Sequence record: MK599315.1
DNA length: 64,000 nt
Strand: one strand, 5' to 3'
A program made the translations under genes and the position numbers. Positions 9,841-59,915 of this stretch are shown here, one piece after another; position 1 is the stretch's first letter, and the number at the start of each line of letters is the position of its first letter. The notes under the pieces were generated by a model. The model made no database searches, was not told where the DNA came from, and worked only from the letters and a program-made list of their open reading frames with translations.

Positions 9841-9867
9841 AGCCTCCCTTCGGGGAGGCTTTATTTT
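9841..9867 (+). terminator. Intrinsic terminator
   Basis: AGCCTCCC-TTCG-GGGAGGCT-TTATTTT. Confidence 0.8.
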
Positions 9868-12950: not shown

Positions 12951-12973
12951 GCCTCCCTTCGGGGAGGCTTTAT
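12951..12973 (+). terminator. Intrinsic terminator
   Basis: GCCTCCC-TTCG-GGGAGGC-TTTAT. Confidence 0.8.
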
Positions 12974-34359: not shown

Positions 34360-35097
34360 ATGAACCCATTGATCTTATTCTCGGGTGGATTAGATTCCAC
34401 TTACATGCTTCAGCAGTATCTTCAAAAAGGTTCGGTGGATGTCATGTACATCAATGCTGGTCAAGACGAAGAAAAGATGAAGTTAGAACTCAGGCAACGA
34501 CAAGTAATCCTTGAAAAGTTTTCTGAGTTCTACCCTTACAAAGTACAAGCGCAATATGAACGTCTGAAAAGTACCCAGTTACAAGGTGATAATACCAAAT
34601 GGTCACAAGTTGCACCGTGGTTATTTGGGGCGCTGGCTATAGCTGATTCGGCTCGACATAGCAAGTTGATGATAGGGTATGTCAGTGATGATGGTGCCTA
34701 CTTCGGATCACATCTACGGTACATCGAAGACGCTTGGTATAATCTGCAAAAGGTATCTTGCGTTAATGATCCTATTCCAATTGAGTTCCCTTTACTCGGC
34801 ATGACGAAGGTCGATATTCTTCGTGATCTAGATAAGAGAGTACTGAACGACATTTGGATATGTGAGACACCTACTAATGAAAAACATTGTGGCAAATGTA
34901 AGCCGTGTGTAACCATGACTCGTGTTCTTAGCGATTACAAAATTCGACATAAGGAAACTGTATTTGCTACAGCTCGCAGAGCACTGATTCCACATAAGTT
35001 TCCAGTGGATAGATACCCAGGTCCGATGGATAAAGATCACAACCATTATGTCTTTAACATGGCTGGCCCAGATTACTACAAAATCCCGAGGCATTGA
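34360..35097 (+). CDS. QueC-like PP-loop ATPase
   Basis: LFSGGLDSTY PP-loop; Zn motif C-x8-CGKCKPC. Confidence 0.8.
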   Translation: MNPLILFSGGLDSTYMLQQYLQKGSVDVMYINAGQDEEKMKLELRQRQVILEKFSEFYPYKVQAQYERLKSTQLQGDNTKWSQVAPWLFGALAIADSARHSKLMIGYVSDDGAYFGSHLRYIEDAWYNLQKVSCVNDPIPIEFPLLGMTKVDILRDLDKRVLNDIWICETPTNEKHCGKCKPCVTMTRVLSDYKIRHKETVFATARRALIPHKFPVDRYPGPMDKDHNHYVFNMAGPDYYKIPRH

Positions 35098-37387: not shown

Positions 37388-38032
37388 ATGACAGTTCTCT
37401 CTGATAAAACAATTCGTGAATACTGCGAAGGCACAATGGTCGGTGCACATGGTCCAATGATAGAACCATTTCACGGTTCGTCAGTGAAAGAAGATAGTCA
37501 TGGAAAGCGTATCGCTTCCTATGGTCTGTCCTCTGGGGGTTATGATCTTCGAGCTGGTACTGAGTTTAAAGTATTCAAGCCTCTACCTAAGTTCACTCTT
37601 TGGCAACGTTTCAAAGCCTGGGTAACAGGTAAAGAACTTGAACACCCTGTACTGGATTACAAGAATATCAGCGCTGATCTGTTTGATACAGTCTACGGTG
37701 ATAAAGTTGTAGTTCCCCCAGGTGGTTTCCTTCTGACTCATTCGAAAGAGTATGTTCGAATGCCTCGGAATGTAATCGCAATGTGTATTGGTAAATCTAC
37801 CATCGCGCGAGCTGGTTGGAACTGTCTGTGTACTCCGATCGAACCAGGTTGGGAAGGACATATCACGTTCGAGTTCCAGAACACTACTAATCGCCCTAAC
37901 GTGTTCTATGCACATGAAGGTGTTTTGCAACTGGTGTTCCATGATCTCGATCAAGATTGTGAAACTTCCTATGCAGATCGTGGTGGTAAATACATGAAAC
38001 AGGCAGATAAGGTTATTCTGCCTCGGGTATAA
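37388..38032 (+). CDS. dcd: dCTP deaminase
   Basis: SYGLSSGGYDLR, GKSTIARAG, TPIEPGWEGHITFE and YADRGGKY motifs. Confidence 0.95.
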   Translation: MTVLSDKTIREYCEGTMVGAHGPMIEPFHGSSVKEDSHGKRIASYGLSSGGYDLRAGTEFKVFKPLPKFTLWQRFKAWVTGKELEHPVLDYKNISADLFDTVYGDKVVVPPGGFLLTHSKEYVRMPRNVIAMCIGKSTIARAGWNCLCTPIEPGWEGHITFEFQNTTNRPNVFYAHEGVLQLVFHDLDQDCETSYADRGGKYMKQADKVILPRV

Positions 38033-38686: not shown

Positions 38687-41276
<2,590 letters not shown>

Positions 41277-49538: not shown

Positions 49539-49863
49539 AATCGTAAGTCGTAATCTACTGCAATCCACTGGTGCTTGGGCAGTCGTCCATAACCGTGCTA
49601 CCATGGACTTCATTGCTATCGGTCATGACCGTAAGGTTATTAAAGGTATCAGTCTGGGTTATCCGGTGAATGTTGGTGATGTCGATTTCAGTCATGTCGT
49701 GGATGTCCCCATGACCTTCGAAATCAGTTATCAAAATGATCCACATCTGGGTCATCCTACTGGTAATATGGAAGCTCTTCTGAAAGCTATTGAAGAAACT
49801 ACCCATAAAACTCTAGGTCTTCCTAGCAAGTTGACCGTAGCTTCTAACGATGGAGGTGTTTAA
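49525..49863 (+). CDS. Hypothetical protein
   Basis: AAGG SD; stop overlaps the thyA start. Confidence 0.65.
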   Translation: MTISEIVSRNLLQSTGAWAVVHNRATMDFIAIGHDRKVIKGISLGYPVNVGDVDFSHVVDVPMTFEISYQNDPHLGHPTGNMEALLKAIEETTHKTLGLPSKLTVASNDGGV

Positions 49864-51293
49864 TGCATCAGTATCTACAACTACTTGAAGATACCCAGAA
49901 GTACGGTGTATTTAAAGGTGACCGTACTGGTACGGGTACTACCTCTTTGTTCGGTAGACAGTTCCGCTATGATCTTCGTAACGGTAACCTCCCTGTAGTG
50001 ACCACCAAGAAGATTCATCTTCCGTCGGTTGAAGAAGAACTCAACTGGATGAAGTCTGGTGACACTCGCCTTGAGTATCTCCTGAGCAAGAACGTCACCA
50101 TCTGGAACGAGTGGGTTAAGCCGGGTACTGAAGTATTCGAAAAGGTTTCTGATGATTGGCTGACTACAGCTGTTCAGAAGAAGTTCAAGAACATTCCGTT
50201 TGAGATGCATTTCAGCAATGAGATCGGTGATGTCGATTGGAAGTGGATTGATCCTGAACAGGACAAATCGGCACTACTGTTGATCAACCTGAAAGCCTGG
50301 GCTGATGTAAGTCGTTTCGGTCCTGGTCCCGATGCATTCGACTACTATGGCATGGCTCTACGCGTATATCGTATTGTCATTGGCGATGCGAAGATCGTGA
50401 TTAAAGACAACGATGGTCTGTTGGCTGCCTTCCGTTTGGTTGGTGGTGATCTTGGTCCGGTCTATGGTAAAACCTGGCGTGATATCGACGATGTTCGTAT
50501 AGTTCCTAAAGTAGACTGGGCTAATTACGAGAAACGCGGCTTTAAGTTCGTAGTTGACGTACCTGGTGTTGATTACACGAAAGATGAGTGTGTTATTCGC
50601 CGGCGTGTGGATCAGGTTCAAGAACTGCTTTACCAACTGGAAAACAATCCAGATAGTCGTCGACTGATTATCTGTGCCTGGGATCCACGTTTGGTCGAAG
50701 ATCAGGCACTCCCGCCATGCCATGCATTTATTCAGTTCTGGACCCGTGAACTTACCGTAGATGAACGAGTGCAAGCTCTAGACCAAACGCATTTCGAAGC
50801 TGATGCTTACCATGATCAGATTAGTGGTGAGACTACTCGTGGTCAACCTCCATTCGGTGGTGCTGAGCAGGTTAAAGCACTTCTGCGTATCTGTCGTGGT
50901 TATGAAAAGGCTACCGATGAAGCAGTGGTAGAATGGTTGGATCAACATGGTGCTCCGAAACGAGCTATCAGTTGTCAACTCTATCAAAGATCGGCGGACG
51001 AATTTTTGGGCGTGCCCTTTAACATCATGTTCTATTCGCTGATGACTCATCAGTTGGCGAACCAGTTTAACATGGTAGCAGAAGAGTTCATCTGGACTGG
51101 TGGTGACTGTCACATCTACAGTAACCATGAGGAACAGGTTACTCTGCAACGTTCGCGGAATACTTATCCTACTCCTACCATCCGCTTCAAGCCTGAGGCC
51201 AAAGGTAAACCTTTCCTTGATATCACTCGGGAAGATTACGAGATTCTGGATTATCAGTTCCATCCGCACATTGCTGGTAAAGTTGCTGTTTAA
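49863..51293 (+). CDS. thyA: Thymidylate synthase with large insertions
   Basis: DRTGTGT, LPVVTTKK, PDSRRLII, ALPPCH, QLYQRSADEFLGVPFNI and GDCHIY motifs. Confidence 0.96.
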   Translation: MHQYLQLLEDTQKYGVFKGDRTGTGTTSLFGRQFRYDLRNGNLPVVTTKKIHLPSVEEELNWMKSGDTRLEYLLSKNVTIWNEWVKPGTEVFEKVSDDWLTTAVQKKFKNIPFEMHFSNEIGDVDWKWIDPEQDKSALLLINLKAWADVSRFGPGPDAFDYYGMALRVYRIVIGDAKIVIKDNDGLLAAFRLVGGDLGPVYGKTWRDIDDVRIVPKVDWANYEKRGFKFVVDVPGVDYTKDECVIRRRVDQVQELLYQLENNPDSRRLIICAWDPRLVEDQALPPCHAFIQFWTRELTVDERVQALDQTHFEADAYHDQISGETTRGQPPFGGAEQVKALLRICRGYEKATDEAVVEWLDQHGAPKRAISCQLYQRSADEFLGVPFNIMFYSLMTHQLANQFNMVAEEFIWTGGDCHIYSNHEEQVTLQRSRNTYPTPTIRFKPEAKGKPFLDITREDYEILDYQFHPHIAGKVAV

Positions 51294-51300
51294 CATAAAC

Positions 51301-51325
51301 GCCTCCCTTCGGGGAGGCTTTATTT
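51301..51325 (+). terminator. Intrinsic terminator
   Basis: GCCTCCC-TTCG-GGGAGGC-TTTATTT. Confidence 0.8.
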
Positions 51326-51949: not shown

Positions 51950-52353
51950 ACAAGATTGAACTCAAGCGTCAACTGGAACTGGTTGTTGAATTGATGGGCG
52001 TAGACCCTGACCCTCTTAAGATCGGTATTGCTGGTGATCGAGTTGATCCTGCTGTTCGCTGTGGTATCTTCAATGGGAAAGACCCAGGTAGCGAATTCAG
52101 TATCGGTCTTGGGGTCATCAGTCGTAAGCAATGGCTTGAGCTTACTGACGATGCACTCGTCCTCAACAAGCCTGACAAAGATCCTGTAGTCATCCCTTAT
52201 GACGCCATTTACGAATTGAACATTCCTCTGACGTATGGCGATCAAGTGGTTAAGGAAGGTTGGATGTATTACAACCTACTGGGAAATTCGATGTTCATGT
52301 ATTTGGACACGGGTAAAGAAGAGAAACTCAAACTTGAAAAGGTAGGTGAATGA
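51946..52353 (+). CDS. Hypothetical protein
   Basis: GTG start with AAGGA SD. Confidence 0.65.
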   Translation: MNKIELKRQLELVVELMGVDPDPLKIGIAGDRVDPAVRCGIFNGKDPGSEFSIGLGVISRKQWLELTDDALVLNKPDKDPVVIPYDAIYELNIPLTYGDQVVKEGWMYYNLLGNSMFMYLDTGKEEKLKLEKVGE

Positions 52354-53177
52354 TGGATCCACGTCACCCTGTTAGTGATGAGATGCGTGCAGTTATAGAC
52401 GCCGAGTTAACTCGTATCGAACAGAAGTATGGTGTAAAGATCATTTACGCCTGTGAGTCCGGTAGTCGTGGTTGGGGTTTCGCTTCTACTAATAGTGACT
52501 ACGATGTTCGCTTCATCTACGTTAACCATCCGAGTCATTATGTCCGGGTTGATAACGAAGGTCGTGACACCATCGAAGAGATGGTTTCCAAGGAACTCGA
52601 TCTGGCTGGTTGGAGTATCACCAAGACACTTCAACTGGCTTACAAGTCTAACCCGACTCTGTTGGAGTGGTTGAACTCCCCGATCGTTTACCGTAAGAAC
52701 GAATGGGATTACAAACTGATTCGTGATTACGCTATCAAGCACTTCATTCCCGAATCGAGCTTCATGCACTATATCTCCATGGCCAAGCAAACCAAGATGC
52801 GTTGGCTGTCGGATGAGAAAGTCCGCATGAAGAAATACTTCTATGCTCTCCGTCCACTGTTAGCAGCATTGTGGGTTGAGACTAGTCGTGAACATCCACC
52901 GATGGTATTCCATGAACTCCTACCGATTCTGTCTGATCCCACCTTGTACAAACGTATTCAGGAACTGGTCAACTGTAAGGTAGGTTCCACTGAACAAGAC
53001 TTGATCGATCGTTGCCCTGTATTGGACCGTTTCATCGATTTCCATTTGGCTAAAGAGAAACCCGACTTCGGTAAATACGAACGTCCGGATATCTTTAAGC
53101 TGAGTGAACTCGCGTGGCACTTCGTTGATCAATACAAGTTCGACACGTTCCAGCTTATCCATGAGAATCCTAAATGA
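52350..53177 (+). CDS. Pol-beta superfamily nucleotidyltransferase (RlaP/YcgL-like)
   Basis: CESGSRGWGFASTNSDYDVRFIY, KSNPTLLEWL and KKYFYALRPLL motifs. Confidence 0.88.
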   Translation: MMDPRHPVSDEMRAVIDAELTRIEQKYGVKIIYACESGSRGWGFASTNSDYDVRFIYVNHPSHYVRVDNEGRDTIEEMVSKELDLAGWSITKTLQLAYKSNPTLLEWLNSPIVYRKNEWDYKLIRDYAIKHFIPESSFMHYISMAKQTKMRWLSDEKVRMKKYFYALRPLLAALWVETSREHPPMVFHELLPILSDPTLYKRIQELVNCKVGSTEQDLIDRCPVLDRFIDFHLAKEKPDFGKYERPDIFKLSELAWHFVDQYKFDTFQLIHENPK

Positions 53178-53755
53178 GTATAACTCTGGAGGCAGCCGCA
53201 ATAAATGCAATGGCATCAAGGAATCCCTTGGGTTATGCAAACGCAATCGGCTGTACGATGACTATGAAACAAGAGCCGTATGTACCAATCTCCAAGTGGG
53301 TTAAACTGCGTTGTGTGGTGCTCTACCTAATCTGCTTAGCATTTATGGGTGGTGCAGTCTACAACTCATTCTTCTCTGACTACGTAACCAAACGTAAGAC
53401 CCAGGTTGTATTGACCTGGAAATGGGAAGAGACCCACAAATACAAACATGGGATCTACACAGAGCTAATGGGTCGTTGGGAAGGGAAGATGAAAGGTGTC
53501 CCCTTCGTATACGAAACTAAGCTAGGTGATTACACTTATCACCATGTCCCCGTTGGAACTGACTATCAACTCGACATAGCTCCACGAGATGTTGACGATG
53601 GTAACGACGCATGGGTGCTACTCAGTGCAGTGTGGATGGCTGTAGCGGCTATTCTCAGTTGGCCTGCAATATGGTTAAGTGTAAGACCATGGTTTGCTGA
53701 TATTGAAAGACGAAGGAAACATAAAGAGTTATCCATGGCCGTTGAATCGGACTGA
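53174..53755 (+). CDS. Membrane protein with two transmembrane segments
   Basis: Two hydrophobic helices flanking a beta-rich loop. Confidence 0.65.
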   Translation: MSITLEAAAINAMASRNPLGYANAIGCTMTMKQEPYVPISKWVKLRCVVLYLICLAFMGGAVYNSFFSDYVTKRKTQVVLTWKWEETHKYKHGIYTELMGRWEGKMKGVPFVYETKLGDYTYHHVPVGTDYQLDIAPRDVDDGNDAWVLLSAVWMAVAAILSWPAIWLSVRPWFADIERRRKHKELSMAVESD

Positions 53756-53894: not shown

Positions 53895-55148
53895 ATGACT
53901 ACTCAAAAATACGTTATGCTGAACGAACAAAATGAATTCCCAATTAAAGCTTGGGTTAAAGGCGTCCCTGTTGAAGCTGATGCAAAACGTCAGCTGAAGA
54001 ACATCGCGGGACTCCCGTTCATTTACAAGCATTTGGCTGTAATGCCTGATGTCCACCTTGGTACCGGTGCAACCATCGGTTCCGTAATCGCTACGCGGGG
54101 TGCAATCATTCCGTCTGCGGTAGGGGTCGATATTGGGTGCGGGATTGCATGCCAGCTTACTGATCTGACAGCTAACGACATGACTCATGGTCTGCAACAT
54201 CTTCGTTATAAAATCGAATCCCGTATCCCCCATGGTCGTACTGACAATGGTGGCCCGAATGACCGTGGTGCATGGAGTGACTTCAACCTCGTTTACAAGA
54301 AACTCGAACCGGAGCTCCAAGCTCAGGTTAAGAAGCTTGAAGAGGAACTGAAGCTCATCGTGGCTAAACACCCGAAACTGGGTAAGGCTGCTAACCGTGC
54401 ATTCAACCATGCTGGTACCCTCGGCACTGGTAACCACTTCGTAGAGATCTGTCTGGATGAACAAGATCGAGTTTGGATCATGCTCCATTCGGGTTCGCGT
54501 GGGATCGGTAACGCAATCGGTCGGTACTTCATTGAGAAAGCAAAAGAGGAGATGCGGCTCTACCACATCAACCTGCCTGATCAGGACCTCGCTTATCTAC
54601 CGGAAGGTACCAAGTACTACAGCGACTACATCGAAGCTGTACATTGGGCTCAGCGTTATGCCACGCTCAACCGTACGATCATGATGCGCGCCACTATCGA
54701 GGCAGTTGCAGATTACATGGGTCGACCAATCAATACCAGCTTATCAGCTGTGCAATGTCACCATAACTACGTCTCCTTCGAGAACCACTTCGGTGCGAAA
54801 GTATCCGTAACTCGTAAAGGCGCAGTGCGTGCAGATGAGGGTATGCTGGGCGTTATTCCTGGATCGATGGGCGCGAAGAGCTTCATCGTGAAAGGTAAAG
54901 GGAACCGCGAGTCCTTCTGTTCGTGTTCGCACGGAGCAGGACGTGTCATGTCCCGAACCCAAGCCGCTAAGACTTTCACTCTTGCTGACCACGCTCGTGA
55001 TACTGCCGGTGTAGAATGCCGGAAAGACATTGACGTGATCGACGAGACTCCAAAGGCTTATAAGAACATTGAAGACGTAATGGCTGCTCAGGATGACCTC
55101 ATTGAGATCGTCCACACCCTGCGTCAGATTGTTTGCGTCAAGGGCTAA
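53895..55148 (+). CDS. rtcB: RtcB RNA ligase (2',3'-cyclic phosphate/5'-OH)
   Basis: MPDVH, VGVDIGCG, GTLGTGNHFVE, LHSGSRG, HHNY, RKGA, PGSMG, CSHGAGR and DETPKAYK motifs. Confidence 0.96.
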   Translation: MTTQKYVMLNEQNEFPIKAWVKGVPVEADAKRQLKNIAGLPFIYKHLAVMPDVHLGTGATIGSVIATRGAIIPSAVGVDIGCGIACQLTDLTANDMTHGLQHLRYKIESRIPHGRTDNGGPNDRGAWSDFNLVYKKLEPELQAQVKKLEEELKLIVAKHPKLGKAANRAFNHAGTLGTGNHFVEICLDEQDRVWIMLHSGSRGIGNAIGRYFIEKAKEEMRLYHINLPDQDLAYLPEGTKYYSDYIEAVHWAQRYATLNRTIMMRATIEAVADYMGRPINTSLSAVQCHHNYVSFENHFGAKVSVTRKGAVRADEGMLGVIPGSMGAKSFIVKGKGNRESFCSCSHGAGRVMSRTQAAKTFTLADHARDTAGVECRKDIDVIDETPKAYKNIEDVMAAQDDLIEIVHTLRQIVCVKG

Positions 55149-55155
55149 CCCGAAC

Positions 55156-55171
55156 GGGGACTTCGGTCCCC
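55156..55171 (+). terminator. Hairpin between rtcB and the PRS-like gene
   Basis: GGGGAC-TTCG-GTCCCC with a weak U tract. Confidence 0.55.
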
Positions 55172-55196
55172 AACTTCTTCCCTAAAGGAAAAATAA

Positions 55197-56084
55197 ATGA
55201 TTCGAATTACTCAGCTTCACGGTAACGGCTTGGCAGATCACTACGATTGTCAACCCTTTAAATTCCCTGGCGGTGAGATCGGTATCAAGATCCCTCTGAA
55301 AGATCTCAGAAAGAAAGGCGAACGATTCATAATCAATGCTTGGCTTCGTAATAGTGACGATATCATGGAACTGTTCCTGGTATTCGACGCTATTCGTCGC
55401 CAGCGTATTCGTCCTGAAATACACTTGGTTATTGGTTATCTGCCGTACGCACGACAAGATCGTGTTTGCGATGAAGGTGAACCTCTGTCGATTAGTGTGA
55501 TGACTGGTTTGATCAATGCATTGGACGCTACGTCTGTATGCCTGTACGATCCGCACAGTAATGTGTCGCTGCCACTCATCAACAATTGCCGCGAGATTAC
55601 CCAAGCAGATATCATCAAAAGCTGGGTGTGTGTCGAAGGACAACTTCTGGAAAATCCGAGTGACTGGTGGTTGGTTGCCCCTGATGAAGGTGCACGTAAA
55701 AAGACCGAAGCCATTGCGAAAGAGATCGGTGCTGCTGGCGTACTGTACGCTTGTAAGAACCGTGAACTGTCAACTGGTAAGATCACTCATACGTCTTTGT
55801 TGAATGCCCATGACGTTCCTCGATTGACAAAGCTGTTGGTTATCGATGACATCTGTGATGGTGGCCGCACGTTCATTGAACTTGCTAAGGTTATCCACGA
55901 GCAGTGCATCGTAGATCAATTGGGTCTGTTTGTAACCCATGGTATTTTCTCCAAGGGTTTCGATGAACTGAACGAATACTACGATTATATCCAGACCACT
56001 AACACCTATCATCCTAACGCTGTAAATGATTATCGGCATGATGGTGTACGTGACCCGAAATTCTTCTCTCATTCTGTTTTCTAA
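55197..56084 (+). CDS. PRPP-synthetase-like protein, probable Adps (ADPR pyrophosphokinase) of NARP1
   Basis: FKFPGGE, YLPYARQDR, DPHS, VAPDEGA and LLVIDDICDGGRTF motifs; immediately upstream of the NAMPT-like gene. Confidence 0.85.
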   Translation: MIRITQLHGNGLADHYDCQPFKFPGGEIGIKIPLKDLRKKGERFIINAWLRNSDDIMELFLVFDAIRRQRIRPEIHLVIGYLPYARQDRVCDEGEPLSISVMTGLINALDATSVCLYDPHSNVSLPLINNCREITQADIIKSWVCVEGQLLENPSDWWLVAPDEGARKKTEAIAKEIGAAGVLYACKNRELSTGKITHTSLLNAHDVPRLTKLLVIDDICDGGRTFIELAKVIHEQCIVDQLGLFVTHGIFSKGFDELNEYYDYIQTTNTYHPNAVNDYRHDGVRDPKFFSHSVF

Positions 56085-56100
56085 TCCGAGGATCAAAAAT

Positions 56101-57867
56101 ATGTCTAATGCTCTCTATGCAGTAACCGCAACTGACTGCTACAAGCCCGGCCATGGCGCTCTGTACCCGCAAGGTACCGAACGTAAGTATGCAAACTTCA
56201 CCCCACGTTCTGCTAAGCAGTTCCTGCGGTCGAAGTCTTGCTCTGCGTTCTACGACAACAAAGTCGTTAACTTCGGTCTGCAAGGTACCTGGCACGAACT
56301 GGTAGAACTGTGGGATCGTACCTTCTTCAATCTGCCTCGTGAAATCGCTGTTAAACGCGCTGCACGTCGTTTCGACAACATGTGCGGTAAAGGCGTTATC
56401 AAACACGAGTGTCTGTACAAGCTGCATGCTCTGGGTTACCTGCCTCTGACTGTGCTGGCTATTGACGAAGGCGAACGTGTAGATGTTGGCGTACCTACCT
56501 TTGTGGTTTACAACAGCCTGGATGACGATGATCACTACTGGCTGGTGAACTACCTGGAAACCATCGTCAGTGCCTACAACTGGAAGATGATCTGCAACGC
56601 AACTATTGCAGCTGAGTATCAGCGTGTACTGAACCACTACGCTGATCGCACCTGCGATAACCGTGAGCACGTCAAGTTCCAGGCACACGACTTCAGCTTC
56701 CGTGGTATGAGTGGTCCTGAAGATGCAATGCGTTCTGGTACAGCTCACCTGACTAGCTTCGCTGGTACCGATACCATCCCGGCTCTCGATTACGCTGAGA
56801 TGTATTACGGTGCTAACAGTGATACTGAATTGTTGGGTGCATCAGTTACTGCAACTGAACACGCTGTCGCCACAACCAACATCCTGTACCGTCTGCAAAT
56901 GAAGATCAACTTCCTCCAAGAGGAAGGTACTGTGATCACTCCGGAGCTGCATGACCAACTGCGACTGGAAGCTGAACGTGACTATATCCTGGAGATCATT
57001 CTTCAGAAAGTCCCGGAAGGCATTATTTCGCTGGTCTGTGATTCCTTCGATTTCTGGGGTGTTATCTCTGATGTTCTCCCGAGCATCCGTGCAGAAATCG
57101 AAAGTCGTCTGAAGAACGAGCTGGGTCTGGCGAAAGTTGTTGTACGTCCTGACTCTGGTGATCCGGTTAAAGTCATCACTGGCTACATGGCTTATCCGAT
57201 TAAATTCGCTGATCGTGTTGATTTCGAGAAACACATTGCCGAATACGGTTCCATTGAGTACGCTGGTTACGAAGTTGTTAGCGTAGGTGGTAAGTACTAC
57301 GAGATCAACGACCTCGCTGTCAGTCTGTCTGACTTCCTCTCTGAGACTGAAATCCCTGAGGTGGAAGTACGTGGTGCAATTGAAGTCCTGTGGGACTCCT
57401 TCGGCGGCACTGAGAACAGTAAAGGCTTCAAGTGCCTGAACGAATACGTTGGCCTGATCTATGGTGACTCGATCACTGTAGACCGTACCGAGCAGATCAT
57501 GTCTCGCCTGGAACGTAAAGGCTTCGCTTCTAGCAACGTAGTTCTTGGTATCGGTAGCTTCACCTATCAGTACAACACTCGCGATACTTTCGGCATGGCT
57601 GTCAAAGCTACTGCTGTTCAGATCGAAGACGAGTTCGTTGAACTGTACAAAGATCCTAAAGCTGCTTCTTCCAAGAAGTCGGCTAAAGGTTTCCTGCGTG
57701 TGGTGAAAACCGAAGATGGTAAGTTCGTTCTGGAACAAGAAGCTGACCTTAGCTGGGCTGCTTTGGAAACCGAATCGGGTGAACTTAAACTGTTCTTCAA
57801 GAATGGTGAGTTCTACAAGCACGACACGATGGCTAAGATCCGGGAACGGATTGCGACCTCTCTGTAA
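56101..57867 (+). CDS. NAMPT-like phosphoribosyltransferase, probable Namat of NARP1
   Basis: TDCYK, HDFSFRG, GTDT, SVTATEH, SLVCDSFD, VVVRPDSGDP, LIYGDSI and KKSAKG motifs; ATG 56101 with GAGGA SD. Confidence 0.88.
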   Translation: MSNALYAVTATDCYKPGHGALYPQGTERKYANFTPRSAKQFLRSKSCSAFYDNKVVNFGLQGTWHELVELWDRTFFNLPREIAVKRAARRFDNMCGKGVIKHECLYKLHALGYLPLTVLAIDEGERVDVGVPTFVVYNSLDDDDHYWLVNYLETIVSAYNWKMICNATIAAEYQRVLNHYADRTCDNREHVKFQAHDFSFRGMSGPEDAMRSGTAHLTSFAGTDTIPALDYAEMYYGANSDTELLGASVTATEHAVATTNILYRLQMKINFLQEEGTVITPELHDQLRLEAERDYILEIILQKVPEGIISLVCDSFDFWGVISDVLPSIRAEIESRLKNELGLAKVVVRPDSGDPVKVITGYMAYPIKFADRVDFEKHIAEYGSIEYAGYEVVSVGGKYYEINDLAVSLSDFLSETEIPEVEVRGAIEVLWDSFGGTENSKGFKCLNEYVGLIYGDSITVDRTEQIMSRLERKGFASSNVVLGIGSFTYQYNTRDTFGMAVKATAVQIEDEFVELYKDPKAASSKKSAKGFLRVVKTEDGKFVLEQEADLSWAALETESGELKLFFKNGEFYKHDTMAKIRERIATSL

Positions 57868-57874
57868 TAGACAT

Positions 57875-57897
57875 GGGGAGCTTCGGCTCCCCTTTAT
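57875..57897 (+). terminator. Intrinsic terminator
   Basis: GGGGAGC-TTCG-GCTCCCC-TTTAT. Confidence 0.8.
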
Positions 57898-57927: not shown

Positions 57928-57956
57928 TCTCTTGTATCCACAACGAGGTAACTGCA

Positions 57957-58355
57957 ATGTCGAATAAAGACCGTTTAGATGAAAAGAAAGAATGGCAAGA
58001 ATCGAACCCAGTTCTCAATGAGTTCTGCTGGGCTGTAAGTCGTACAATGGGCGACGTAGCACGTACCAGTGACGACCGTACTCCCATTGTCGATATCCCT
58101 GCTGGAAAGACCTATGAAATCACTACCAACCAGGAGAACGATATTTATAATGTCGGTCTTGAAACTGGTATGGTGAACTTCGTTGATCACCTACGCGAGA
58201 ATGGTTACAAGATCATCTCGCCGGTAAGTGGGCATCCTGTCCCATTTGAGCAAGCTGTAACCTTGGTAAATAGCACAGAGCAGGTCGTACAAGAACTACC
58301 TGGTAAGTCTTTCGTTGAAACCTTCTATGATTATAACTGGGGTGTGAATACATGA
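57957..58355 (+). CDS. Hypothetical protein (first gene of an early operon)
   Basis: GAGG SD downstream of a TATATTAC promoter. Confidence 0.7.
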   Translation: MSNKDRLDEKKEWQESNPVLNEFCWAVSRTMGDVARTSDDRTPIVDIPAGKTYEITTNQENDIYNVGLETGMVNFVDHLRENGYKIISPVSGHPVPFEQAVTLVNSTEQVVQELPGKSFVETFYDYNWGVNT

Positions 58356-58558
58356 TCGCAGCGCCGCCGGCACCGGGTAAAGTAACGATAGATGGTTTAC
58401 GTCGAACGTTGTCAGATCAGATTGAAGCTGAAATTTCATTGGCTTGTCGTGAAATTGAACTGACAGACATTCGTTATGTAGATCAAAAAGAAATACTCGA
58501 AATAGTGCGGCGGTTCCGTAATGACGTTCGCACAACCATCACTGATAAAGGTAAATAA
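58352..58558 (+). CDS. Small hypothetical protein
   Basis: ATGA overlap with the previous gene. Confidence 0.6.
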   Translation: MIAAPPAPGKVTIDGLRRTLSDQIEAEISLACREIELTDIRYVDQKEILEIVRRFRNDVRTTITDKGK

Positions 58559-58559
58559 A

Positions 58560-59915
58560 ATGACGATTGAAATGGATGAATTGAAACCGATCCGCGAAGG
58601 TTTTGGTGTAGTAGAAGAAACTCGTAAGCTTGCACGCATTGTTGAGATCGATGATGTTGTGAAACACCCTAATGCCGATGCTCTGGAATTGGCTATTGTT
58701 GGTGGTTGGCAACTTTGTGTAAAGATGGGCGAATATAAGAAAGGTGATCGCGCTATTTACTGCGAGATTGATTCTCTTCTTCCTCTGGATAACGTTAAGC
58801 TCTTCGGTTTTCTTGAGAGCCGTCGGTCCGACAATCGGCGTGTAGACGGTAAAAACTATCATCGTTTGAAAACTATCAAGCTTCGTAAAGAGCTCTCTCA
58901 AGGACTACTGGTTCCGATTCCCGATGAGTTCAAAGATGAACCCGTTGATACTAACCTGACCCTGAAGCTGGGTATCCTTAAGTACGAGTCTGCTCCTCCG
59001 ATGGTATCGAAGGCTCATGCGGCACGTAACGCTCCGTGGATCGTTAAACTTGGTGCCAAGCTGATTGGTAATCTGGGTGGCGCTCTGAAACCGTGGCCTG
59101 AGATGCTAACTAAGTCCGATCAAGACCGCATTCAGAATAAGACCGTTGCGTTTTATAACCTGAAAGAAGACGGTGATGACATGGAAGTTACCTATAAGCT
59201 GGATGGTAGCTCCATGACCGTATTCTGTGTCGATGACAAAGGTATTCGTACTGGCGTTTGTTCGCGGAACTACGAACTCGGAATGGGCGGTGAGAAGTGG
59301 GGATTCATCCAGCAGCTTCGGTATTGGGTTGGTAACTTCCTTATCCGTAACCGTAATCTGTTCCGTAAGAAGACCTGGGTTACTCCAGAAGGTAAACTTC
59401 GTAATGGTATTATTCTGCCCCTTTGGACGAAAGGTACCGCTATCGAAGACAATAACTTCGTACGTGTAACTAACCAACAACAGATCATCGAACGTCTTCT
59501 CAAGTTCCACAAGAACACCGGTCGCTTCATTTCTGTACAAGGGGAACTGATTGGACCATCTATTCAAGATAACTTTGAAGAAGTGGCTGATTACGATTAT
59601 TACATCTTCAACGTGTATGAGGATGGTAATCGTGAACTCCTGCCGGCCGAAGCACGAGCTGTTGTAAAAGACCTTGGTCTGAATTATGTTCCCGTGCTTG
59701 ACCCGTGCTGGAAACCTTCTAAGGAAATGTCTGTTAAAGATGTTCTCGCTATGGCTGAAGGTCCATCTGCATTTAAGAACAAGCGCGGATACCGGGAAGG
59801 TCTGGTATTTAAGTCCAACCAACGTGTACTATCTTGGAAGGCTATCAGTAACGCATATCTTCTCAAGAAAGCAAAAGAAGAAGAGAAAGCAGCTGCTAAA
59901 GAAGACGCTGTATAA
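58560..59915 (+). CDS. ATP-dependent RNA ligase, Rnl2/DRB0094-like, with an N-terminal tRNA-binding OB domain
   Basis: HPNADALE OB domain; TYKLDGSS, CSRN, QGELIG, FNV, EGLVFK and KAISNAYL motifs. Confidence 0.9.
   Translation: MTIEMDELKPIREGFGVVEETRKLARIVEIDDVVKHPNADALELAIVGGWQLCVKMGEYKKGDRAIYCEIDSLLPLDNVKLFGFLESRRSDNRRVDGKNYHRLKTIKLRKELSQGLLVPIPDEFKDEPVDTNLTLKLGILKYESAPPMVSKAHAARNAPWIVKLGAKLIGNLGGALKPWPEMLTKSDQDRIQNKTVAFYNLKEDGDDMEVTYKLDGSSMTVFCVDDKGIRTGVCSRNYELGMGGEKWGFIQQLRYWVGNFLIRNRNLFRKKTWVTPEGKLRNGIILPLWTKGTAIEDNNFVRVTNQQQIIERLLKFHKNTGRFISVQGELIGPSIQDNFEEVADYDYYIFNVYEDGNRELLPAEARAVVKDLGLNYVPVLDPCWKPSKEMSVKDVLAMAEGPSAFKNKRGYREGLVFKSNQRVLSWKAISNAYLLKKAKEEEKAAAKEDAV

Follow-up and report, generated by a model that had tools for sequence, protein, structure and literature searches.

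A probable NARP1 (adps-namat) operon for NAD+ reconstitution in Pseudomonas phage PA1C

The stretch of DNA analysed here (the window, 64,000 nucleotides) comprises bases 186,001-250,000 of Pseudomonas phage PA1C (MK599315.1, genome 304,671 bp); feature coordinates are those of the window, and kilobase ranges are those of the respective genome. At positions 55197-57867, a stretch of 2,671 bases with 100% identity to MK599315.1, two neighbouring genes encode a phosphoribosyl pyrophosphate (PRPP) synthetase-like and a nicotinamide phosphoribosyltransferase (Nampt)-like protein. These genes most probably constitute an operon of the NAD+ reconstitution pathway NARP1, with adps encoding an ADP-ribose pyrophosphokinase (Adps) and namat a nicotinamide ADP-ribose transferase (Namat). 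NARP1 was described in 2024 (Osterman et al.), and both enzymes have since been solved structurally (PMC12774641, PMC13586617). Three phage systems served for comparison: Bas63 (JohannRWettstein; bas63_0079/0080, Osterman et al. 2024), the Bacillus phage SPbetaL1 (SpβL1; 9W5X/9W5W, PMC12774641) and the Vibrio phage ICP1, whose Adps is available as apo, substrate and product structures (PMC13586617). The pair and its features are arranged as follows:

55186-55189, plus strand: Shine-Dalgarno-like AGGA, 7 nt before the adps start (sequence)
55197-56084, plus strand: putative adps, ADP-ribose pyrophosphokinase (PRPP-synthetase-like), 295 amino acids, QBX32438.1, assigned by homology
55755-55757, plus strand: codon of Adps Lys187, corresponding to the catalytic Lys185 of ICP1 and Lys162 of SpβL1 (alignment; PMC13586617)
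55845-55874, plus strand: Adps PP-loop/donor-site motif DDICDGGRTF, residues 217-226, with the lid Phe226 (alignment)
56088-56091, plus strand: Shine-Dalgarno-like GAGG, 9 nt before the namat start, inside the 16-nt gap (sequence)
56101-57867, plus strand: putative namat, nicotinamide ADP-ribose transferase (Nampt-like), 588 amino acids, QBX32439.1, assigned by homology
56881-56988, plus strand: Namat insertion 1, approximately residues 261-296 (HMMER gap, alignment, AlphaFold2 model)
57184-57357, plus strand: Namat insertion 2, approximately residues 362-419 (HMMER gap, alignment, AlphaFold2 model)
57553-57585, plus strand: Namat clamp helix (SCH) motif GSFTYQYNTRD, residues 485-495, with the aromatics Phe487 and Tyr491 (alignment; PMC12774641)
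57875-57897, plus strand: intrinsic-terminator-like hairpin GGGGAGC-TTCG-GCTCCCC (57875-57892), then TTTAT (sequence)

The original prediction had described the genes as adjacent, co-oriented, 16 bp apart and followed by a terminator, and the coordinates of the open reading frames (ORFs), the gap and the hairpin agree with this description. The adps stop codon TAA occupies 56082-56084, and namat begins with the ATG at 56101. The longest mechanical ORF of namat begins at 56026 with an ATG inside adps; the start at 56101 is backed by the alignment with the Namats of Bas63 and SpβL1 (MTK..LYAVPA) as well as by the GenBank annotation. The hairpin at 57875-57892 consists of seven GC-rich pairs with a UUCG loop, and TTTATGTCAT lies directly 3' of it.

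PA1C belongs to the phiKZ-like jumbo phages and is presumed to form a nucleus, because its relative HPP-Temi (98% identical to PA1C) encodes a nuclear shell protein and the tubulin PhuZ and because the annotation notes of PA1C itself cite homologues from phiKZ, PhiPA3 and 201phi2-1. Close relatives of PA1C account for seven more records with this gene pair (97.9-89.1% identity), among them HPP-Temi, phiHQ, PS119XW (counted twice, as GenBank and RefSeq copies), BRkr and phiLBG22. In the NCBI taxonomy, the PS119XW group belongs to the genus Pawinskivirus.

The product of the first gene matches Pfam Pribosyltran_N and phrog_619. According to the ICP1 structures, Adps enzymes carry the catalytic Lys185 on a β-hairpin and share their acceptor residues with cellular PRPP synthetases (Prs), while the PP loop is repurposed with a Phe lid and the C-terminal α11-α12 module of Prs is lost (PMC13586617). 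All these traits were recovered in PA1C. In an alignment of 124 sequences, F23, R86, H120, D163, K187, D217, D218, D221 and F226 of the PA1C protein correspond to F18, R87, H121, D161, K185, D212, D213, D216 and F221 of ICP1 Adps, and K187, R86, H120, D163, D217, D218 and D221 are each invariant in 119 homologues. In the AlphaFold2 model (pLDDT 91), Lys187 is predicted to lie on a β-hairpin (E181-189 / E196-202), and no helix is predicted beyond residue 259; likewise, the alignment stops short of the C-terminal helices α11-α12 of E. coli Prs. The PP loop DDICDGGRTF is identical in Bas63 Adps, and reads DDLSSFGGTF in SpβL1 Adps (27-31% identity to PA1C, depending on the alignment) and DDMIDTGGTL in E. 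coli Prs. ICP1 differs in this loop (CDGAAS in comparison to CDGGRT in PA1C).

The scores point in the same direction. With TIGR01251, whose curated cut-off is 113 bits, the PA1C protein obtained 106 bits (106.2), which misses the cut-off and falls among the values of validated Adps (98-139 bits; Bas63 138, SpβL1 106, ICP1-like 98), in comparison to 423 bits for E. coli Prs. All Prs equivalog models were failed (41-92 bits vs cut-offs of 296-536). With phrog_619 the score was 270 bits (validated Adps 248-333, E. coli Prs 193), and in BLAST comparisons with the PA1C protein Bas63 Adps reached 138 bits, the ICP1-like Adps 136, SpβL1 Adps 79 and E. coli Prs 62. By scores and motifs, the first gene of PA1C would thus group with validated Adps, apart from cellular Prs.

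The product of the second gene matches Pfam NAPRTase, weakly NAMPT_N, and strongly NCBIfam NF006629 and phrog_448. The last two models fail to separate Namat from true Nampt: the control, the Nampt of a T4-like Klebsiella phage in which the 4 kb to either side encode no Adps, obtains with them scores as high as those of validated Namats. In the comparison of hidden Markov models proposed in the original prediction, the first gene thus scores like Adps and not like Prs, and for the second gene the models do not split Namat from Nampt. Aeromonas phage CC2 was also considered as a control of the NARP2 type and was rejected as not clean, as its clamp is a variant of its own and a PRS-like gene is located seven genes upstream.

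The assignment of the second gene is carried by its residues. Namat combines the catalytic core of Nampt with a 'selectivity clamp' for the adenine of ADPR-PP, the pyrophosphorylated ADP-ribose (ADPR), as found in the SpβL1 enzyme; the clamp helix SCH has the signature GS-X-Φ-X-Φ-X-Φ-TRD, in which X is aromatic and the residues at positions 3 and 7 stack on the adenine, and the β1-β2 loop (SCL) adds a further stacker, its third residue being Arg, Lys or Tyr and its fourth stacking if the third is Lys or Tyr (PMC12774641). The motif GSFTYQYNTRD of PA1C is letter-identical to residues 390-400 of SpβL1 Namat, in comparison to GGGLLQEVTRD in the Klebsiella phage Nampt and GAQTYQRNTRD in the NadV of H. 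ducreyi (9KE8). Furthermore, the core residues D12, Y14, F198, S199, R201, D224, A251, the catalytic H254, R349, D351, G455-D456, G485-S486 and R494-D495 are kept; the reference residues in SpβL1 are D13, Y15, F189, R192, D215, the catalytic His, R306 (= R349), D308, G360-D361, G390-S391, R399 and D400. All residues of SpβL1 Namat that contact nicotinamide (NAM) or nicotinamide mononucleotide (NMN) are conserved, and the AMP-phosphate contacts are shared as well except for Ala362, which is Ser in PA1C. The best sequence match in the PDB was SpβL1 Namat (9w5x/9w5w, 343 bits), in comparison to H. ducreyi NadV (316 bits) and human NAMPT (~159 bits). The AlphaFold2 model (pLDDT 92.6, pTM 0.91) gave as its best Foldseek match the entry 'Crystal structure of Namat' (target-normalised TM 0.93). 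Sequence and predicted fold together support the identification of the second gene as namat.

The original prediction had also noted two extra insertions in the Nampt-like protein. These are real in comparison to SpβL1 Namat and human NAMPT; they are not peculiar to PA1C, being shared by Bas63 and most close homologues. HMMER aligned the PA1C protein to SpβL1 Namat, a short form of 491 amino acids without either insertion, in three stretches (8-260, 297-361 and 420-584). In the model, insertion 1 is predicted to form a helical hairpin (H254-274 / H281-303) as a continuation of the helix that starts with the catalytic His254, and insertion 2 a small ordered α/β mini-domain at a hot-spot of length variation in the family. 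Bas63 Namat (593 amino acids), likewise of the long form, has both insertions at the same sites, the first shorter and the second longer (spacers of 37/94 amino acids in comparison to 50/69 in PA1C). In the 120 best homologues, the median length of the spacer between His254 and Pro305 is 50 residues (SpβL1 22), and the spacer between Pro355 and Gly425 ranges from 18 to 147 residues (SpβL1 17). The insertions are thus a trait of a large 'long-form' Namat subfamily, not of PA1C alone. They make up 16% of the residues and 45% of the amino acid differences between PA1C and PS119XW, and are therefore less constrained than the Namat core. The structural paper on Namat does not discuss them (PMC12774641), and a feature search of the ESM Atlas with insertion 2 alone was uninformative, yielding only NAPRTase fragments with scores ≤0.75. 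About 15 metagenomic long-form Namats (630-690 amino acids) carry a segment of 111-147 residues at the site of insertion 2. In three others of about 890-900 amino acids (P0129, P0186 and P0212) the extra sequence lies elsewhere, and one local alignment covers about 60% of the query.

The absence of an NMN adenylyltransferase (NMNAT) from the window, as claimed initially, was confirmed. Searches by phmmer with E. coli NadD and NadR gave a best E value of 0.28 among 2,950 six-frame ORFs with a minimum length of 50 amino acids, taken from the window, from 235-284 kb of PA1C and from HPP-Temi. No NMNAT, NadR, PnuC, Nudix or Macro protein is listed for bases 1-299,000 of HPP-Temi, which have a PHROG-style annotation, and the only 'nucleotidyltransferase' there is an RlaP homologue. 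Neither the phage Nmnat required for NARP2 nor, as judged from the missing NadR match and the lack of any such annotation, the NadR-like enzyme and PnuC required for NARP3 were found in the PA1C and HPP-Temi sequences searched. With the Nmnat of Vibrio phage KVP40 as query, Osterman et al. screened the PA1C genome as well and labelled the PA1C protein 'Adps-associated'; in their study, NARP1 and NARP2 did not co-occur in any phage.

Osterman et al. define NARP1 operationally by homologues of Adps and Namat that lie close together in one phage genome, and the PA1C genes are direct neighbours. Together with the SCH motif, both catalytic cores, the truncation of Adps and the lack of a detectable phage NMNAT, this bears out the original reading, and the probability that the pair is a NARP1 operon which rebuilds NAD+ is estimated at roughly 87% from sequence and predicted structure. 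Adps would transfer the β,γ-pyrophosphate of ATP to the terminal ribose of ADP-ribose, yielding ADPR-PP and AMP, and Namat would then convert ADPR-PP and nicotinamide to NAD+ and pyrophosphate. In this way, the pair would restore NAD+ from the two products of NADase effectors (TIR, SIR2, SEFIR and similar) and the infection could continue. Both reactions and the role in counter-defence are expected for PA1C by analogy with the enzymes of SpβL1, Bas63, FADO and ICP1. The restored NAD+ would also supply the NAD+-dependent DNA ligase of the phage, which had been predicted at 39234 and proved to be of the LigA type by its domains:

39234-41276, plus strand: NAD+-dependent DNA ligase, LigA type, an NAD+ consumer (PF01653 228 bits, PF03120, HHH, BRCT)

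Both genes of the pair are under strong purifying selection, as is evident from dN/dS values of 0.055 (Adps) and 0.069 (Namat) between PA1C and PS119XW.

Several points weigh against the assignment to NARP1. No biochemical or genetic test of the PA1C proteins was found, and their function is predicted by homology; in this respect PA1C, a 305-kb phiKZ-like phage, differs from Bas63, an 87-kb Felixounavirus whose NARP1 was validated by deletion. The placement of Adps is derived from scores and motifs instead of a full Prs/Adps phylogeny, and F92 and F223 of ICP1 Adps are not conserved in PA1C (C91 and E228), nor are they in the Adps of Bas63 or SpβL1. The SCL of PA1C Namat (S37-A38-K39-Q40-F41) is 9 residues longer than that of SpβL1, which uses Arg40; its third residue is a Lys, as in Bas63, and belongs to the allowed set, and the fourth is Gln40, where Bas63 stacks with the aromatic Trp43. 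Phe41 of the SCL is nearly invariant among close homologues. The search for NMNAT was made with single-sequence queries and directly for 186-284 kb of PA1C only, and via HPP-Temi (1-299 kb) for the rest. Finally, Namat enzymes retain PRPP-dependent NMN synthesis in vitro (PMC12774641), and it is therefore likely, by analogy, that the pair performs some ordinary NMN salvage besides NAD+ synthesis.

That such salvage is the whole function of the pair, with a PRPP synthetase and a Nampt/NadV making NMN and the adenylyltransferase of the host finishing NAD+ in a NARP2-like manner without a phage NMNAT, is improbable. The names in GenBank and PHROG (PRS/Nampt) agree with it, as do the PRPP activity just mentioned, the equal scores of Namat and true Nampt with NF006629 and phrog_448, and the 316 bits of H. 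ducreyi NadV, which are close to the 343 bits of SpβL1 Namat. NARP2 (Nampt and Nmnat, Vibrio phage KVP40) and NadV/Nampt indeed share the Nampt fold and the nicotinamide-coupling chemistry with the PA1C enzyme. However, the clamp aromatics Phe487 and Tyr491 are present in PA1C and absent from NadV and the Klebsiella phage Nampt, and the adjacent gene encodes an Adps which stays below all Prs equivalog models and the TIGR01251 cut-off and lacks the C-terminal module of Prs. In addition, 94% of the phages with a Nampt of the KVP40 type also possess Nmnat (Osterman et al.), and none was found here.

Still less probable is a module for nucleotide supply, in which a PRS-like enzyme boosts PRPP for phage nucleotide synthesis and the Nampt-like gene is loosely coupled. 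The backbone of this region does contain ThyX (~49863-51293), a dCTP deaminase and a thymidylate kinase, but both the tight coupling over 16 nt and the linkage, which is conserved in four genera of jumbo phages, concern the Namat partner specifically; moreover, 97% of the Adps-clade proteins adjoin Namat, and bacterial prs almost never does (Osterman et al.). Natural fusions point the same way: in phrog_12872 (547 positions), positions 14-232 match Adps (55197-56081) and positions 262-538 match Namat (56101-57864), which indicates that fused Adps-Namat proteins occur and gives a Rosetta-stone link between the two enzymes. There is equally little to be expected from an extended NARP1 (NARP1-AP or RyDEP-assisted), in which a small neighbouring gene would make ADPR-1''-phosphate or cyclic ADPR signals available to the pathway. 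Such a form is recognised by a Macro-domain ADPR-1P phosphatase or a RyR-domain glycosidase no more than two genes away from the operon. About 15% of NARP1 operons have a Macro-domain phosphatase, and small ORFs without annotation lie on either side of the pair (53174-53755, 57954-58355 and 58352-58558), but Pfam and PHROG scans of these ORFs, which are less sensitive than the HHpred used in the published screen, revealed no Macro, RyR or other domain, so that neither extension is supported. These three ORFs remained without any Pfam or PHROG match; hydrophobic stretches in the one of 193 amino acids (53174-53755) suggest an association with membranes. The HPP-Temi annotation differs downstream of namat, where it shows one coding sequence (CDS) of 555 nt.

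Detection of NARP1 by existing tools is routine. The original prediction had considered the class of system as described and its presence in this phage as possibly undescribed, and the latter did not hold. The NARP1 assignment of PA1C is already published, by computation, as both proteins are contained in the supplementary tables of Osterman et al.: MK599315_00291 is among the Adps homologues of Table S1, where its last column reads 'Yes', and Table S2 gives MK599315_00292 as 'Adps-associated' Namat; both entries include the sequences. As pathway, structures and gene-pair assignment are all published, the discovery value is small. New are the residue-level confirmation against the more recent structural criteria, the recognition of the insertions as a subfamily trait and the record of the RNA-repair genes in the neighbourhood.

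The latter genes and a second hairpin surround the pair as follows:

52350-53177: RlaP nucleotidyltransferase (PF10127, 298 bits), RNA repair, flanking the pair
53895-55148: RtcB (430 bits), RNA repair, upstream of adps
55156-55171, plus strand: hairpin GGGGAC-TTCG-GTCCCC, six pairs with a UUCG loop, between RtcB and adps (sequence)
58560-59915: RNA ligase (PHA02142 OB domain and RNA_ligase), RNA repair, downstream of namat

The hairpin at 55156-55171 has no T-run and may be a leaky terminator or an element for stabilisation or processing of RNA.

Outside the PA1C group, the closest Namats are those of RVTF4, D6 and Psa21 (60% identity), Viktualia (50%), and Phabio and the Ralstonia phages RP12/RP31 (48-49%), followed by the Namats of 93-kb Pakpunavirus phages (44-46%). 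Bas63 is more distant (Adps 38%, Namat 42%) and has the same order of adps and namat. The jumbo-phage loci of the PS119XW group, Psa21, D6, Phabio and RP12 encode the same long-form Namat (48-93% identity) with adps upstream; in Phabio, three small ORFs lie between adps and namat, and Psa21 differs by the lack of an adjacent RtcB. RP12 shows the same order as PA1C (RtcB, adps, namat, one further gene, RNA ligase) without a visible RlaP. In phiKZ the backbone is kept (ThyX, 236, RlaP = 237, up to the HD hydrolase 246), and no RtcB, adps, namat or ligase is present at the syntenic site; AntiDefenseFinder reported only Tad1 for this phage (PMC11724313). As RP12 shares the gene order and phiKZ has none of these genes at the site, the block of RtcB, adps, namat and ligase appears to be an accessory module of some phiKZ-like lineages. 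Public sequencing runs gave no RNA data for PA1C, as the matches carry only 5-8% of the sampled PA1C words and represent relatives or fragments.

The RNA-repair genes around NARP1 may represent an accessory 'damage repair' block. If true, such an island would undo both the cleavage of tRNA and the cleavage of NAD+ in abortive infection. A further proposal goes beyond this, namely that the insertions mark a functionally distinct long-form Namat (e.g. for docking of Adps and channelling of ADPR-PP, for regulation, or for localisation in a nucleus-forming phage) and/or that the RNA-repair block is a co-regulated damage-repair island; this is speculative and rather unlikely.

NARP1 allows phages to survive defences that destroy NAD+, among them Thoeris, DSR1/2, SIR2-HerA, SEFIR, short Argonautes and Kongming. 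By reasoning, a nuclear shell, which can shield the DNA from DNA-targeting defences, should not stop the starvation of the whole cell for NAD+. With regard to phage therapy of P. aeruginosa, the presence of NARP1 in the PA1C/PS119XW group and its absence from phiKZ help to predict which host defences can be surmounted.

Some minor observations concern homologues and the remainder of the window. Two Adps homologues (P0023 and P0079, ~276 amino acids, 43-46% identity) are located on Geminocystis chromosomes, and others on megabase contigs; the presence of Adps homologues in cyanobacterial chromosomes agrees with reported bacterial copies of NARP1 that have an unknown housekeeping role. In JSF13, an ICP1-like Vibrio phage, namat (L003:2971-4464) is interrupted in frame by a stop codon close to the 5' end (...PEVTHV*SNFTNRHGK...) and appears in the annotation as two CDS; this reflects either an error in sequencing or the disruption of NARP1 in this isolate. 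At 2,205 nt, the RtcB CDS of PS119XW (L021:1249-3453) is longer than that of PA1C (1,254 nt), and the difference points to an intein or another insertion in PS119XW. The window also contains a QueC-like 7-cyano-7-deazaguanine synthase (34360-35097), which may be tied to the modification of nucleotides or DNA, and the dCTP deaminase (37388-38032). GC hairpins with UUCG tetraloops occur at 11 sites in the window, mostly at gene ends (e.g. 9841-9860, 12951-12968 and 51301-51318). They often have the form GCCTCCC-TTCG-GGGAGGC, are mostly followed by TTTAT(G), and are probably the standard terminators of the phage.

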